Source: Azolla caroliniana (taxonomy: Eukaryota; Plantae; Polypodiophyta). From it: a DNA stretch of 64,000 nt. Both the position numbers and the translations under genes were made by a program. Of the stretch, positions 33,007 through 40,793 are shown piece after piece (the stretch's first letter is position 1; every line of letters begins with the position of its first letter). The stretch spans positions 2,418,001 through 2,482,000 of the forward strand of contig JBHGNT010000013.1 of the NCBI GenBank assembly GCA_043228905.1. Direction: 5' to 3'. Under the pieces are notes generated by a model. The model was not told the origin of the DNA. It did no database searches and worked only from the letters and a program-made list of their open reading frames with translations.

Positions 33007-34134
33007 AACACCGGGTCATTTGAAACAGGTAATATGTCGCATTCTCTTTTTCATATCTTAGTGAGATGTTAAAAAATGCCTTATTTAAGCAGAATTTCAA
33101 CAAGGCACGACGCATGTGTATGTGGTTTATGAAAACATAGCGAAAAAAAGAACTAACTAATATCACGTCAACAAAATCATCCGACGTATATTCTATCTAC
33201 CATGTTTTTGTCCAAATCTTAGACAGGGGTGTATTTGTCAACACAAGTATAATAGTAACACGGGTCCTTGTGCATATTCTAAAAAGCATGCCCCATTGAA
33301 TAAGTGACTTCTTCTAATTATGTGTGTATATTTAAATATAATACATCTTAAAGCAAATTGTGAACCTTGCAATTAAGAGATACTACTATGTCAAGAGAAA
33401 ATTTCCATTGACACATGATACATGACACTGTCAATGTATAAATAAACTAGTCTACAATAACATTCCAATCATACAAGTAAATGATAGAGTATAAACTTAT
33501 CTCCGATATACCCCAAATGATAAAGGAGAGTTTAGATAACATGTACACATACAAGTATACTTAATTTCTAAGTTCAATGATTGTTACACGAAAATTATAA
33601 GTAAGCTCAACTTATATATTACGTCAAAATTTAACAATTCATATTGTTCAAAATTTACAATAAGCCATAACCATTCAATCGAATAATAAGTCTGGTAAAG
33701 CCGTCTACTCAGGATTAGCTCTTTCATCAGGATTTTCCTCATTGGCTTCGTCAGTACGCTAAGTTGAATTGTTAGTATGTTCAGACTCTGAAACGTCTTC
33801 TAATTCAACAAGTTGACCTGTGTCTTCATCTATAGTTCCACAAGTTTTCTAAATGTCATCTGGAACATCTAAGTTTTATTGATATGCTTTGCCCCAACTT
33901 CTTGGTCTTGATCAGGACAACCCCAGATACCTTGGATCCTCATTTTGATGACATTAACTTGCTCAAGGTCCTTCTCTAATGCAATAGAGTTCCTGATAAT
34001 CTTTAAGGCGTATGTTTTAGTAGTACATGACAATAGAATGAAATTGCACAGGTAACATCAAACTGAAGAATAGAATATAACGTTAATCTAAATTGATGTA
34101 AGTTTTATATTATATACCTGTGTCAGAAAACTAA

Positions 34135-34790
34135 TCTAAAACCCATTGAAATTTTGAAACAATAAAATTTGAAAAAATAAAAAATCTTGGATTTTTAATT
34201 GGAATCCAATGCGATGCACTAGATTTCAGTTGAAAATCCAAGTTTTTTTTTTTTTTGTAATTTTTAAAATTTTTTCCATTAAAAAATAAAAAATGGATTT
34301 TCAGCTAAAATACTATGCACTACATTATATTTTAGTATATATAGCTAGAATCTAATGCAATGCGTTGGATTAGAGTCGAAAATCCATTTTTCTTTTTTCT
34401 TTTTCCAATGTTATTTATTTATTTATTTTCCATATAAAATAATAATAAACGGCTTTTCAACTAAAATCCGATAAACTACATCAGATCGTAGTCTATACAG
34501 CTAGACATTGATGCATTGCATCAGATTTTAGCTGGCAATCCTCTTTGTTTCCAATTGTTTTTCATTTTTTCAAAAAATAAATAAAAATATATTAAAAAAG
34601 TGGATTTCCAAATGAAATCTAATGCACTACATCGAATTTCAATTAAAAATCCAAATTTCTTTTAGGTTTTTCATAAAACAATGAGATAATAAAAAAATAT
34701 TACATTTTCAACAAGATCTGAACCATTGAGTCGGATTTCAATTGCAAATTAATGTTTTATGAAAAAACATAAGAAAAATATTGGACTTTC
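34135..34790. repeat. Left internal array of degenerate palindromic repeats
   Basis: Decayed copies of aaatccgatgca-tgcatcggattt (~34201, 34305, 34350, 34460, 34612) between A/T tracts. Confidence 0.7.
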
Positions 34791-35405
34791 ACAATACACA
34801 TTACACTATCTACTCCGTTATTCGAAATCCATATAATACATGTTTGATAGGAGATGATGTCTCATACGTGTATCAGGTCAATGCCTCAAACCTCATGTTT
34901 CATATACCCCTCCGGTCGCCGAGTGTCCGTAGAGCCCAAAGGCGTTTATTACGCGTCACGATTACATCGTCATTGGATTGCGTCTTTGTTTAAGATCCGT
35001 TTATGTATGCATATGGATGGGATCACGCGTATGCCTATGCGATGTTATACATGTCTTAGACATGTAGTGTGCATGTTCAGAATTTGTTATACGATATCAA
35101 TATCATATGCATGACGGGGTTTAGGGTCGCGGTGCCCATTCTCACATTTCTGTGGGGAAGGTGCGGTGACCATCCTTATTTAACGAAATTAGTGCTACTA
35201 CCCTCGGTCGCCCCGATTGTGCCATATGTAAAAATTGCGCAAAGCATGGCCACGGTCGGTGTATGTTGCCTTGGATCATGGTGCCTTGCCCATTCCCCGC
35301 CCATTTAAGGGGAATTAGGTTTAGACCCACTTCTCATTGGATCGCCCTTACGAATCCCGCATCGAGTCTCCCGCGTTCGTTACTTGATTAGGGGGGCGTC
35401 ACGAG
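34791..35405 (+). repeat. Direct repeat A (~615 bp), left of the snRNA cassette
   Basis: Near-identical to 38092-38718 (offset 3301 bp, 12-bp indel). Confidence 0.93.
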
Positions 35406-35968
35406 ACCATCATTGTGAAACGCGTTGGTCATGAGATAACCATGTGACGGGCCACACTAGCTTCAATGTGGAGAAGAGGGCGCGTGTCGCCGTGGCCATT
35501 AGGTTGCTCATTAGTGTGTGCCATTGTCATGACGAGACTCGAGGTTGGGTGACGTGAAAACATAGTTACCTAGATGCAACGATGCGGAACATATTTCCTT
35601 GAGGTTTACGCGCGCCGGTCGTTCAAGTAATTGTAAATTCTCTTTCCCTCGACATGCAGTGGGGGCTAATGATTTACTACGTGCAAACGGGTGGATCTCC
35701 ATTACAATTCTCGCTCGATTCGGGAAGCTCACACGATTTCGTGAAGGTTCGTTTGGTTCAGATATGGGGGCTTATAACCACCAATAACGAATCGCACCTA
35801 TAAGGTGCACTTGGCGATGGGAGAGTATCCCGACTTGGTATAGGGATGGATAATAGGGTGGCTACAACCAAACAACAACAAATGTGGTCCCCACGATCGG
35901 CTAAGGTGGTTTCGATGCAATGAGAGGACCAAAGTTTGTTTAAATGTTGAGATGATTATATAACGTAT

Positions 35969-38091: not shown

Positions 38092-38718
38092 ACATTACGC
38101 ATTACATTATCTAATCCGTTATTCGAAATCCATATAGTACATGTTTGATAGGAGATGTTGTCTCATACCTGTATCAGGTCAATGCCTCAAACCTCATGTT
38201 TCATATACCCCTCCGGTCGCCGAGTGTCCGTAGAGCCCAAAGGCGTTTATTACGCGTCTCGATTACATCGTCATTGGATTGCGTCTTTGTTTAAGATCCG
38301 TTTATGTATGCATATGGATGGGATCACGCGTATGCCTATGCGATGTTATACATGTCCTAGACATGTAGTGTGCATGTTCAGAATTTGTTATACGATATCG
38401 GTATCATATGCATGATGGTGTGTGTTTCGGGGTTTAGGGTCGCGGTGCCCATCCTCGCATTTCTGTGGGGAAGGTGCGGTGACCATCCTTATTTAACGAA
38501 ATTAGTGCTACTACCCTCGGTCGCCCCGATTGTGCCATATGTAAAAATTGCGCAAAGCATGGCCACGGTCGGTGTATGTTGCCTTGGATCATGGTGCCTT
38601 GCCCATTCCCCGCCCATTTAAGGGGAATTAGAGTTAGACCCACTTCTCATTGGGTCGCCCTTAGGAATCCCGCATCGAGTCTCCCGCGTTCGTTACTTGA
38701 TTAGGGGGGCGTCACGAG
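38092..38718 (+). repeat. Direct repeat B, right of the snRNA cassette
   Basis: Copy of 34791-35405; both end ...ggggggcgtcacgag. Confidence 0.93.
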
Positions 38719-39720
38719 TGATTTTGAACGGAAATCCGATGCAGTGCATCGGATTTCCATTGAAAATCCTGTTGAAAATGATCTGTTTTCAACGGGAATC
38801 CGATTCACGTTGAAAACACATCATTTTAAATGGAGAAAATCACAATTTGTTTATTTTTAACACTTTTTTAGAGAAAAATATAAACAAATAAGAAAATTTG
38901 TAAACAAACAAGAAAAAGTGGACTTTCAATGGAAATCCGATGCACTGCATCGGATTTCCGTTGAAAATCCATTTTTTTCAATTCCTATATATTTATTTAT
39001 GATAAAAACAAAAACAATTCAAAACAAATTCAAAATATCTGAAAAATTGGAAACAAATAAGAAAAAATGGATTTTCAATAGAAATCCGATGTAGTGCATC
39101 GGATTTCTGTTGAAAACCCATTTTTTGCAATTTTTATTTATTTATTTATGGGAAAAAATGAAAAACAATTTAAAAAATACAGAAAAATATTTTAAAATAT
39201 GAAAATTTGGTAACAAATAGCAAAAAGTGGACTTTCAATAGAAATCCGATGCAATGCATCGAATTTCCTTTGAAAATTCATTTTTTCAATTTCTATATAG
39301 TTATTTATGAGAAAATAGACAAAAAAAATACCAAAAAAATTCTAAAAACTATGAGAATTTTGAAAAAAATAAGAAAAAGTGGATTTTCTATGGAAATCCG
39401 ATGCAGTGCATCGGATTTCCATTGAAAATCTATTTTTTCAATATTTATTTATTTTTTATAGAAAAAATTCAAAAAAAAAAGCAAATTTGGAAAAAAATAC
39501 GTAAAAATGGACTTTCAAACCAAAATCCGATGCAGTGCATCGGATTTCCGTTGAAAATCCATTTTTTCAATTTTTATTTATTTTTTTATGGGAAAAATAA
39601 AAACAAATTCAAAAACAATTCAAAAAATAAGAAAATTTTCAAAAAAATAAGAGAAATTTGATTTTCAATTGAATCCGATGCACGTAATTGGATTTCCATT
39701 GAAATCTAATTTTTCAATTT
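38719..39720. repeat. Right internal array of palindromic repeats (GAAATCCGATGCA-N-TGCATCGGATTTC) about every 130-200 bp
   Basis: Cores at ~38731, 38932, 39081, 39241, 39393, 39522 and 39671, separated by A/T-tract spacers. Confidence 0.9.
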
Positions 39721-40793
39721 TTATTTATTTATTTACAAGTAAAATAAAAAATGTTTATTTATTTATTTATGGGAAAATGTTTTATTTTTTCAATTTGTAT
39801 TTATTTATGTATTTTCGGGAAATCCATGCAATGTATCATATTTTAGTCTATGTAGCTAGAATTCAATGCAATGCATTAAAATGCAAGAGTATTTTTTTAA
39901 TGGAAATTTTTAAAAAAATTCCAAGACTTACAAGAATCTGATGCATTATATCCAATTCTAGATGTATAGAGTAAAATTCGACATGTTGCGTCAAATCTAG
40001 ATGGAATGAATCGGATTTCTGTACGACATCAAAGGCTTACTATGAGAATCTAAGAAAAATGGAAAACATCTTTAAGACATTTTTTAGATTCTAATGATTT
40101 TGGTAGAAAGCTTCTCTCACATAATCTAATCTTGTAAATGGAAAGTACATAATGAAATATCATAACCAAAAAGTGAGGAGGAGAGATGCATCAAGCACAT
40201 CTACTCTTACATTGGATAATGTTTATATATTTGTGTATGACTTATCTTTGACCAAAACAAGTTATCTGTGACAGACCACAATGAAGATACTAAAAGAGGA
40301 TCTGTAATGTGGCTTCAGACACAACACAAAGACAAACAAGAAGCATGACTCATAAACTCGATGAGGTTGGATTGCAATTGGATCAACACAATGCATTAGT
40401 TGCCATTGATGATGAGGATGAGACCTCATAAACTCGTACTAGTTCATCTAATGGGTATGAAGATGATGACATAAACTTGAAAAATGATTGTCCTGATACG
40501 TTAACTATAAATATTGTATTGCACATCAAGATTTGGATTCAGAATTTCTATAAATATTGGGGTTAGTCATTTTGGACATTCATTTGTAAGTTTGGCATGT
40601 CCATTATTTAGGCATTTTTTTGAACACCTAAATTTCCGTACATGTTAAAAATCAATATATTTTTGGGTCATTTTTAAAATTCCTTTACGCATGTGGCACC
40701 CCTTTTTGTGAATCACCCTAATTTGTGTCATTTTTTGATGGACAGTTCTCAAAATGCGACATATTACCTGTTTCAAATGTCCCGGTGTTCTTA

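Follow-up and report, generated by a model that had tools for sequence, protein, structure and literature searches.

A non-autonomous TIR transposon in the Copia protease region of a fern genome carries a piece of the host U2-U1 snRNA gene repeat

DNA transposons are well known to capture fragments of protein-coding genes. Pack-MULEs, for example, have TIRs of the MULE type and target-site duplications of 9-11 bp. Cytogenetic papers frequently attribute the dispersal of U1 and U2 snDNA clusters to transposons. DNA transposons of the Sola superfamily have 4-bp duplications (PMC3627910), and Sola1 has been reported in Physcomitrella (PMC9033089). Dada transposons occur with U1 and U6 snRNA genes (PMC3706591), and their insertions are located at a fixed position within snRNA or tRNA genes, with duplications of 6-7 bp (PMC3706591), while Cassandra TRIMs carry sequences of the 5S RNA (reviewed in PMC10946416).

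Here, we describe an insert of 7,783 bp at positions 33007-40789 of the window, which is the whole stretch of 64,000 nucleotides of Azolla caroliniana DNA that was analysed. Similar to the Pack-type elements (Pack-MULEs, Pack-CACTAs and the captures by hAT and PIF elements), it is non-autonomous, is bordered by TIRs and a duplication, lacks a transposase and contains internal host DNA, the parent locus of which persists elsewhere, here in contigs L001, L013 and L014. The best explanation, to which we assign a probability of about 0.7, is that a derivative of a DUF7869 transposon family acquired a piece of a U2-U1 array by Pack-type repair capture. The boundaries of the insert and the interrupted host frame are the following:

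32509-33006, plus strand: host Copia gag/protease frame to the left of the insert (frame restoration, Pfam)
33003-33006, no strand: left CTTA target-site duplication, 4 bp, directly outside the left TIR
33007-33043, plus strand: left TIR, 37 bp (repeat search; related TIRs in L007 and L010)
40753-40789, minus strand: right TIR (repeat search)
40790-40793, no strand: right CTTA duplication, directly outside the right TIR
40794-42113, plus strand: host Copia protease-integrase frame to the right of the insert (frame restoration, Pfam)

The two 37-bp TIRs are complementary at 36 of 37 positions, and their sequences have only these two matches within the 64-kb window, with a chance expectation of 0. 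The TIR pattern has no match among the viral contigs searched. A target-site duplication of at most 4 bp is possible at the ends of the insert. When positions 33007-40793, i.e. the insert and one CTTA, are excised, 166 and 440 codons are joined in a single frame that reads FSSYL followed by VGDH. The left piece contains a zf-CCHC domain according to Pfam, and the right piece contains Pol_BBD from profile position 26, followed by gag_pre-integrs, rve and SH3_retrovirus; the insert thus interrupts a Copia pol within its protease barrel. An earlier note on this DNA had described TIRs of 37 bp with one mismatch, a CTTA duplication and a Copia protease frame split between SSYL and VGDH; the repeat comparison bears out the first two, and the restored frame with its Pfam domains bears out the third. 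Two 1.1-kb repeats (30418-31542 and 42802-43913) were considered as the LTRs of the Copia element and rejected, as they are RT-coding (RVT_2) segments.

Judged by its sequence, the insert derives by deletion from a high-copy TIR transposon family in the fern and is non-autonomous. Its two arms contain remnants of two genes and arrays of palindromes:

33836-34024, minus strand: remnant of the last exon of a methyltransferase-like gene, frameshifted (tblastn, 71% to the L010 exon)
34170-34790, no strand: left family-palindrome array, its units degenerate (repeat search)
38719-40022, no strand: right family-palindrome array with a period of ~150 bp and at least seven good units (repeat search)
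40164-40488, plus strand: remnant of a DUF7869 gene, last ~110 codons (tblastn, L010 residues 457-565, 55-60%)

The closest family contig, L008, has a coverage of 75.5 and matches the left arm (window positions 34359-33009) with an identity of 95.6%, the match ending 2 bp short of the element tip. It has the frameshift in the methyltransferase-like remnant in common with the window copy and ends within the palindrome array, leaving the centre of other members uncovered. A TIR that matches the window TIR at 33 of 37 positions is present in L007, and both TIRs are present in a full-length relative, L010, where they are located 6.45 kb apart. L010 encodes a DUF7869 protein (3.4e-52), which is presumably the transposase of the family, and a second, divergent gene that is ParB/N6-N4-methyltransferase-like (N6_N4_Mtase match, 2.3e-6), the two genes being separated by palindromes. 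The flanks of L010 show no matching duplication (CGAT versus CCTT), and the U2-U1 cargo is absent from it. In tblastn searches with both L010 proteins, only C-terminal remnants were obtained from the insert, in agreement with the statement in the earlier note that it holds no intact transposase; the window copy retains the 3' stubs alone of both L010-type genes. The earlier note had suggested a look for an autonomous partner with the same TIRs; L010 has related TIRs and a presumed transposase. The DNA of the DUF7869 remnant region is 76% identical to L010, and a 54-amino-acid piece of the methyltransferase-like remnant has 43 homologues. A protein search with P0001 gave no homologue beyond itself. 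For DUF7869, the literature search returned no paper, and the protein has no sequence match in the PDB, weak leads only in an Atlas search and a single-sequence AlphaFold model with a pLDDT of 36. The palindrome core also has three single bacterial matches among the genome contigs, which were taken as unrelated.

The central part of the element, embedded in its palindrome array, is a cargo of 3,928 bp with the following structure:

34791-38718, plus strand: cargo, 1.19 units (A-B-A') of a 3.3-kb U2-U1 tandem repeat (self-comparison, array contigs)
34791-35405, plus strand: repeat arm A, 615 bp (self-comparison)
38092-38718, plus strand: repeat arm A', 627 bp (self-comparison)

The arms A and A' differ by 17 substitutions and one 12-bp indel and recur with a period of 3301-3313 bp. 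L001 contains the segments in the order B-tail, A, B, A-like, and, through exact self-overlaps of 119 bp and 96 bp, L013 and L014 form cycles of 3,316 bp and 3,265 bp, respectively. Such closed-cycle contigs are equally compatible with extrachromosomal circles and with arrays. In all of these three and nine similar contigs, the unit is arranged in tandem or as a closed cycle, and the 13 other contigs known to contain it are of the tandem or cycle type or collapsed with such contigs. No junction between palindrome and cargo was found among the other fetched contigs with the unit, and in the metagenome collection the end of A has a single exact match, which continues into B rather than into the palindrome. 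The 31-mer share reaches 0.47-0.52 in runs of only 71-82 million letters, which is approximately explained by L001 (0.34) and L008 (0.09), and thus indicates that the cargo unit and the carrier family are each multi-copy on their own. An interpretation of A and A' as the ends of an LTR or TRIM element was rejected, as there are no TG..CA ends and no duplication, and their period is that of the array.

Microhomology at the joins between cargo and palindromes is 1-2 nt, and positions 34791-38718 are not flanked by a target duplication, which points to repair-mediated capture. We suggest that a non-autonomous derivative of a two-gene DUF7869/methyltransferase-like element inserted into the Copia protease region with a 4-bp duplication, and that 3,928 bp of the 3.3-kb host repeat were copied into its central palindrome array. 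The cargo would be filler DNA from the repair of a double-strand break or an excision gap, i.e. a Pack-type capture, and the cassette is probably a silent, methylated passenger.

The cargo contains two complete snRNA genes with their promoters, and two short repeats that adjoin them:

35969-36008, plus strand: U2 promoter, with a USE-like 11-mer at 35969-35979 and a TATA at 36002 (read from the sequence)
36035-36241, plus strand: full-length U2 snRNA gene (RF00004, 146.9 bits against a threshold of 46, model positions 1-192)
36216-36348, plus strand: 51-bp tandem repeat, ~2.6 copies, over the U2 3' end and its flank (repeat search)
36830-37022, no strand: GCTTCCGCCAA, four exact copies downstream of U1, retained in all array contigs
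37053-37216, minus strand: full-length U1 snRNA gene (RF00003, 131.4 bits against a threshold of 69.5, model positions 1-166)
37243-37281, minus strand: U1 promoter, with a USE-like 11-mer at 37281-37271 and a TATA at 37249-37243 (read from the sequence)

The two genes are convergent, their 3' ends lie 811 bp apart, and the 5' splice-site-pairing end of U1 is intact in the covariance-model alignment. Each USE-like 11-mer has one mismatch to RTCCCACATCG and is placed at -66 in U2 and -65 in U1, the TATA is at -33 in both, and the starts of USE and TATA are 33 bp apart in U2 and U1 alike. Both genes thereby have the arrangement of plant Pol II snRNA promoters, with a USE at about -70 to -60 and a TATA at about -30. 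The earlier note had read here a complete U2 (36035, plus strand) and a complete U1 (37216, minus strand), convergent at ~0.8 kb and each with USE and TATA; the full-model Rfam matches and the promoter positions agree with this. The U2 promoter is identical to that in L001. Compared to the array contigs, U2 has private transitions at 36112 (plus-strand T in the window, C in the arrays) and 36203 (A versus G), and U1 has one at 37062 (A versus G, likewise on the plus strand).

The plant snRNA 3' box, CA(N)3-10AGTNNAA, is located downstream of the genes (PMC5079582). No strict match to this angiosperm consensus is present within ~70-90 nt of the U2 and U1 3' ends, and a match with one mismatch is found downstream of U1; the 3' flanks of both genes are common to the window copy and the array copies. 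The 51-bp repeat is present in L001 and L013, and L014 has one copy fewer. A 149-amino-acid ORF between U2 and U1 has no homologue in a protein search, none of ten ORFs from the cargo and the array is present in the protein collection, and none of the sequencing runs on record as RNA contains the stretch.

The cargo in the window has 60 private substitutions (1.8%), compared to one each in L013 and L014, and C>T or G>A changes of the deamination type account for 35 of these 60, which identifies it as an old passenger. The private changes are less frequent in the genes and promoters (4/501) than in the spacers (56/2673; p = 0.049), a difference that gives a weak indication of constraint and, with it, of use of the genes.

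An assembly chimera, in which repeats were misjoined and no such molecule exists, is extremely improbable. Cargo and carrier are each multi-copy, and assembly is difficult in palindrome arrays, but two false joins would be needed that rebuild one element in the correct orientation on both sides, and the 60 private changes, which are absent from the array contigs, indicate a distinct old locus and not misplaced array reads. Alternatively, the cassette may have arrived after the element had landed, by ligation of an array circle or fragment into a break in the palindrome array, which is fragile, and was then never transposed. This is unlikely, although the unit assembles as closed cycles and the junctions show no duplication and microhomology of 1-2 nt only, since a circular monomer would provide 1.0 unit and not 1.19. 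The arms are also more diverged from the family consensus than the cargo is from the array, both for transitions at GC sites (3.98% versus 2.49%, p = 0.13) and for other substitutions (1.73% versus 0.90%, p = 0.03), but the comparison of ages is weak in that L008 may not be the direct ancestor of the window copy. The structure expected from such late entry is, moreover, indistinguishable from that of gap-repair capture.

The earlier note had proposed that the family amplifies and disperses functional or variant U1 and U2 genes. The part of this proposal that stands is a real, high-copy TIR element with whole, promoter-bearing genes; dispersal is unsupported, as the cargo is an excerpt of a host repeat, L010 is without it, and the cassette is old and decayed by deamination. 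Mobilisation of the loaded element in trans, with spread of such genes by the family, is accordingly distinctly unlikely. Intact TIRs and an intact duplication, in a high-copy family, make a source of transposase plausible, both genes and promoters are intact, and private changes are slightly rarer in the genes than in the spacers. However, there is no second composite among the other contigs with the unit, the sole metagenome match to the end of A runs into B, and the deamination-biased private decay of 1.8% speaks against a recently active master.

Under the preferred reading of a Pack-type capture, the loaded copy is one old, decaying, dead-end element, and its importance is therefore modest. 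Two whole snRNA genes are nevertheless a rare kind of transposon cargo. The captured Pol II pair is self-contained and predicted to need nothing from its surroundings for expression, so that a single later transposition would yield a new working locus. The transposon explanations for the movement of U1/U2 clusters in cytogenetics are without sequence evidence, and the locus in the window demonstrates the first step of such a movement, in which a mobile element is loaded with an array unit. It is very unlikely that a loaded element mobilised by the DUF7869 protein, then or now, seeds U1/U2 loci or arrays that express slightly variant snRNAs; if true, it would be a sequence-level example of snRNA clusters being dispersed by transposons, a route that has long been assumed. 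The bases at 36112, 36203 and 37062 are diagnostic and distinguish the transposon-borne copies.

The literature search identified no TIR element that carries two whole, promoter-bearing Pol II snRNA genes. The element differs from the Pack-MULEs in that its duplication is 4 bp and its partner encodes a DUF7869 protein, the carrier thus not being a MULE, and from Pack-type elements in general in that the cargo consists of two entire Pol II snRNA genes, promoters included, from a tandem repeat, rather than protein-gene fragments. It resembles the Sola transposons in the 4-bp duplication (CTTA) and the TIRs, whereas the published description of Sola includes neither a methyltransferase-like gene nor palindrome arrays. 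Unlike the situation for Dada, the transposon in the window contains the snRNA genes, and it inserted into a Copia coding region with a 4-bp duplication. Cassandra likewise combines a small-RNA gene and its promoter with a mobile element, but it is an LTR retrotransposon with the 5S sequence in its LTRs across the whole family, whereas a single loaded copy is known here and A and A' reflect the periodicity of the array and are not LTRs. Finally, the parent of the cargo is itself a tandem U1/U2 snRNA array with a period of 3.3 kb, in which every unit contains a single U2 and a single U1 gene; the locus in the window differs from it in being an excerpt of 1.19 units within a transposon.

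The composite structure is real and its cargo unusual: a 7,783-bp TIR element with whole U2 and U1 snRNA genes interrupts a Copia reading frame. The features that define it in the window are as follows.

Features of the insert in the window
33007-33043, left TIR, 37 bp, inverted repeat, 36/37 complementary to the right TIR
34791-38718, cargo block, A (615 bp) - B (2,686 bp) - A' (627 bp), contains both snRNA genes
36035-36241, + strand, full U2 snRNA, Rfam 146.9 bits
37216-37053, - strand, full U1 snRNA, Rfam 131.4 bits
40753-40789, right TIR, 37 bp, inverted repeat, 36/37 complementary to the left TIR

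The TIR sequence has only two matches in 64 kb, both at the ends of the insert, where none is expected by chance. The CTTA motif lies directly outside each end, and the duplication is at most 4 bp, because the bases adjoining CTTA on either side differ. Removal of positions 33007-40793 fuses 166 and 440 codons in a single frame, and Pfam identifies a zinc knuckle in the left piece and Pol_BBD (from profile position 26), gag_pre-integrs, rve and SH3_retrovirus in the right piece. The restored frame and the domains on either piece therefore place the break in a Copia pol, inside the protease barrel. The earlier note had claimed these TIRs, the CTTA duplication and the split protease frame, and all of them are borne out.

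The Copia host is tandem or rearranged (RT-gag-PR-INT-RT) and not a simple LTR-bounded element. RVT_2-coding segments at 29884-31542 and 42180-43913, which are 94.4% identical over 1.1 kb, flank the interrupted gag-PR-INT portion. Direct repeats of 1.1 kb (30418-31542 and 42802-43913, 94.4% identical) were rejected as LTRs since they code for RT, and no LTR date is given. The window also contains large segmental repeats (389-13507, 44778-47635 and further), with blocks of 97-99% identity at offsets of ~11.75 kb and 33.4 kb and a tRNA-Pro(TGG) gene in each (11491-11562 and 44914-44985). The Copia/transposon nest sits between the second and third copies.

The cargo derives from a tandem repeat. 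Between its two end segments, A and A', there are 17 substitutions and a single 12-bp indel, and the segments recur with a period of 3,301-3,313 bp; they represent array periodicity rather than LTRs, since TG..CA ends are absent. Probing with 28 nt taken from the end of A identified one metagenome contig, L001 (4,220 bp, coverage 16.8), in which the order is B-tail, A, B and a degraded A-like copy, and U2 and U1 occupy the same positions as in the window. Two contigs from another study, L013 and L014, were reached via an ORF called on L001. The first 119 bases of L013 (3,435 bp) are identical to its last 119, giving a closed cycle of 3,316 bp, while L014 (3,361 bp) has a 96-base end overlap and a closed cycle of 3,265 bp; the cycles differ by one 51-bp repeat. 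In total, 13 contigs contained either ORF of the unit, of which these three kinds were resolved and the others collapsed as similar. The three forms indicate that the parent of the cargo is a 3.3-kb tandem repeat whose units each contain one U2 and one U1, or else circles that arose from such a repeat, and the window cargo comprises 1.19 units. In L001, the unit at 3324-4210, which adjoins the good U2-U1 unit, is degraded (79-86% identity, with numerous changes of the C>T type) and may be a degenerate array edge.

The genes are convergent, with 811 bp separating their 3' ends. The Rfam check thus agrees with the two full, convergent genes that had been described from the sequence, and the promoters described with them were also recovered: each gene has a USE with one mismatch ~65 nt upstream and a TATA box at ~-33, with their starts 33 bp apart and 22 bp of sequence separating them (35969-36008 and 37243-37281). 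In its strict form, the 3' box of angiosperms, CA(N)3-10AGTNNAA (PMC5079582), is missing from both genes, while U1 has a variant with one mismatch. The motif GCTTCCGCCAA occurs four times without mismatch at 36830-37022, at spacings of 44-77 bp and 31-223 nt past the 3' end of U1. It has no copy elsewhere in the window (0.01 expected), all four copies are kept in L001, L013 and L014, and they may act in termination or factor binding at the U1 gene. A 51-bp tandem repeat (~2.6 copies, 36216-36348) duplicates the last ~26 nt of U2 and its 3' flank; it belongs to the array unit and varies in copy number, with one copy fewer in L014 than in L013.

The carrier belongs to a family with a full-length relative on contig L010 (9,440 bp, coverage 14.4), in which a TIR pair 6.45 kb apart encloses two divergent genes. 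Both left C-terminal remnants in the window.

Genes of the full-length relative and their remnants
L010:1737-8190 (ERZ1034431 NODE_345), full-length element with both TIRs
L010:2036-3745, - strand, DUF7869 protein, 569 aa, Pfam 3.4e-52
L010:4156 to ~7345, head-to-head with the DUF7869 gene, multi-exon methyltransferase-like gene, N6_N4_Mtase 2.3e-6, weak DUF6551
Window 40164-40488, + strand, last ~110 codons of the DUF7869 gene (tblastn with L010 protein)
Window 34024-33836, - strand, last exon of the methyltransferase-like gene (tblastn with L010 protein)

These remnants are the only matches to the L010 proteins in the whole window, in agreement with the reported lack of an intact transposase. 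The DUF7869 protein has no PDB relative, and its AlphaFold model (pLDDT 36) is too low in confidence for use. The L010 element is itself a DNA transposon that includes a methyltransferase-like gene. In the left arm of the window element, an open stretch of 54 aa (33872-34033, - strand) has 43 homologues in a set of 1.84 billion representative proteins, and the family is described here from the contigs encoding them. Among named proteins, the closest homologue of the remnant exon is a hypothetical protein from Ceratopteris richardii (54% identity). A second relative, L008 (1,334 bp), aligns colinearly with window 34359-33009 (95.6%) and ends 2 bp short of the element tip. Its assembly coverage of 75.5, together with the frameshift that its ORF has in common with the window copy, marks a high-copy subfamily that is already defective. 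L007 contains a related element end (TIR 33/37). The remainder of the window element's own sequence consists of arrays in which a 29-bp palindrome recurs every ~150 bp, and L010 has short palindromes between the 5' ends of its two genes. Three bacterial contigs (L002, L003 and L004; one from a Ruminococcus MAG, two from Pseudoalteromonas) each contain one exact match to the 23-nt palindrome core, against ~0.02 expected by chance. They contain no arrays, and kinship with the transposon was set aside: they were taken as unrelated hairpins.

The cargo unit and the carrier arm are each multi-copy by themselves. Runs of only 71-82 million letters held 0.49-0.52 of the 31-mers of window 32950-38949, those of three further studies (including a second organism label and a leaf metagenome) 0.47-0.50, and those of two other organism labels 0.16-0.17; none of the runs on record for this stretch is an RNA run. 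L001 alone accounts for 0.34, wholly in the cargo, and L008 for 0.09, wholly in the arm, so generic array units and generic family arms suffice for the run contents, and the shares are uninformative on the composite.

The cargo is embedded in the palindrome array, the units of which reach both junctions. No target duplication flanks 34791-38718, and the joins have just 1-2 nt in common with the donor sequence. Features of this kind are left by break repair with template switching, to which Pack-type captures, and the filler DNA of deletion derivatives, are generally attributed; they suggest the same origin for the cargo. Since capture can occur where an element already sits, the intact CTTA gives no proof that the loaded element moved. 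The exciting claim of the earlier note, that the family spreads snRNA genes, has no support so far; one old loaded copy is known. Divergence is somewhat greater in the arms than in the cargo, which leans weakly towards capture after landing.

Divergence of arms and cargo
GC-site transitions: arms vs L008 3.98%, cargo spacers vs array 2.49%, p = 0.13
Other substitutions: arms vs L008 1.73%, cargo spacers vs array 0.90%, p = 0.03

Counted against L001, L013 and L014, the window cargo has 60 private substitutions in 3.3 kb (1.8%), compared with a single one in each of L013 and L014. G>A or C>T changes make up 35 of the 60, the pattern of methylated DNA, and the arms are likewise biased relative to L008 (17 of 40 changes). 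Private changes affect 4 of 501 sites in genes and promoters versus 56 of 2,673 in spacers (p = 0.049), a faint hint of possible constraint on the former. Three are located in the snRNA coding parts (a U2 loop, a U2 stem G-U to A-U, and C-G to U-G in U1 stem-loop 4), and none inactivates its RNA.

No description of a TIR element whose cargo includes complete spliceosomal snRNA genes was found in the open-access literature. The element is not of the Cassandra type (PMC10946416), nor is it a Dada transposon: Dada targets snRNA genes and makes 6-7 bp duplications (PMC3706591), whereas here the genes lie inside the element. The 4-bp duplication fits the Sola superfamily (PMC3627910) and distinguishes the element from Pack-MULEs, while in its manner of working it resembles Pack-type capture.
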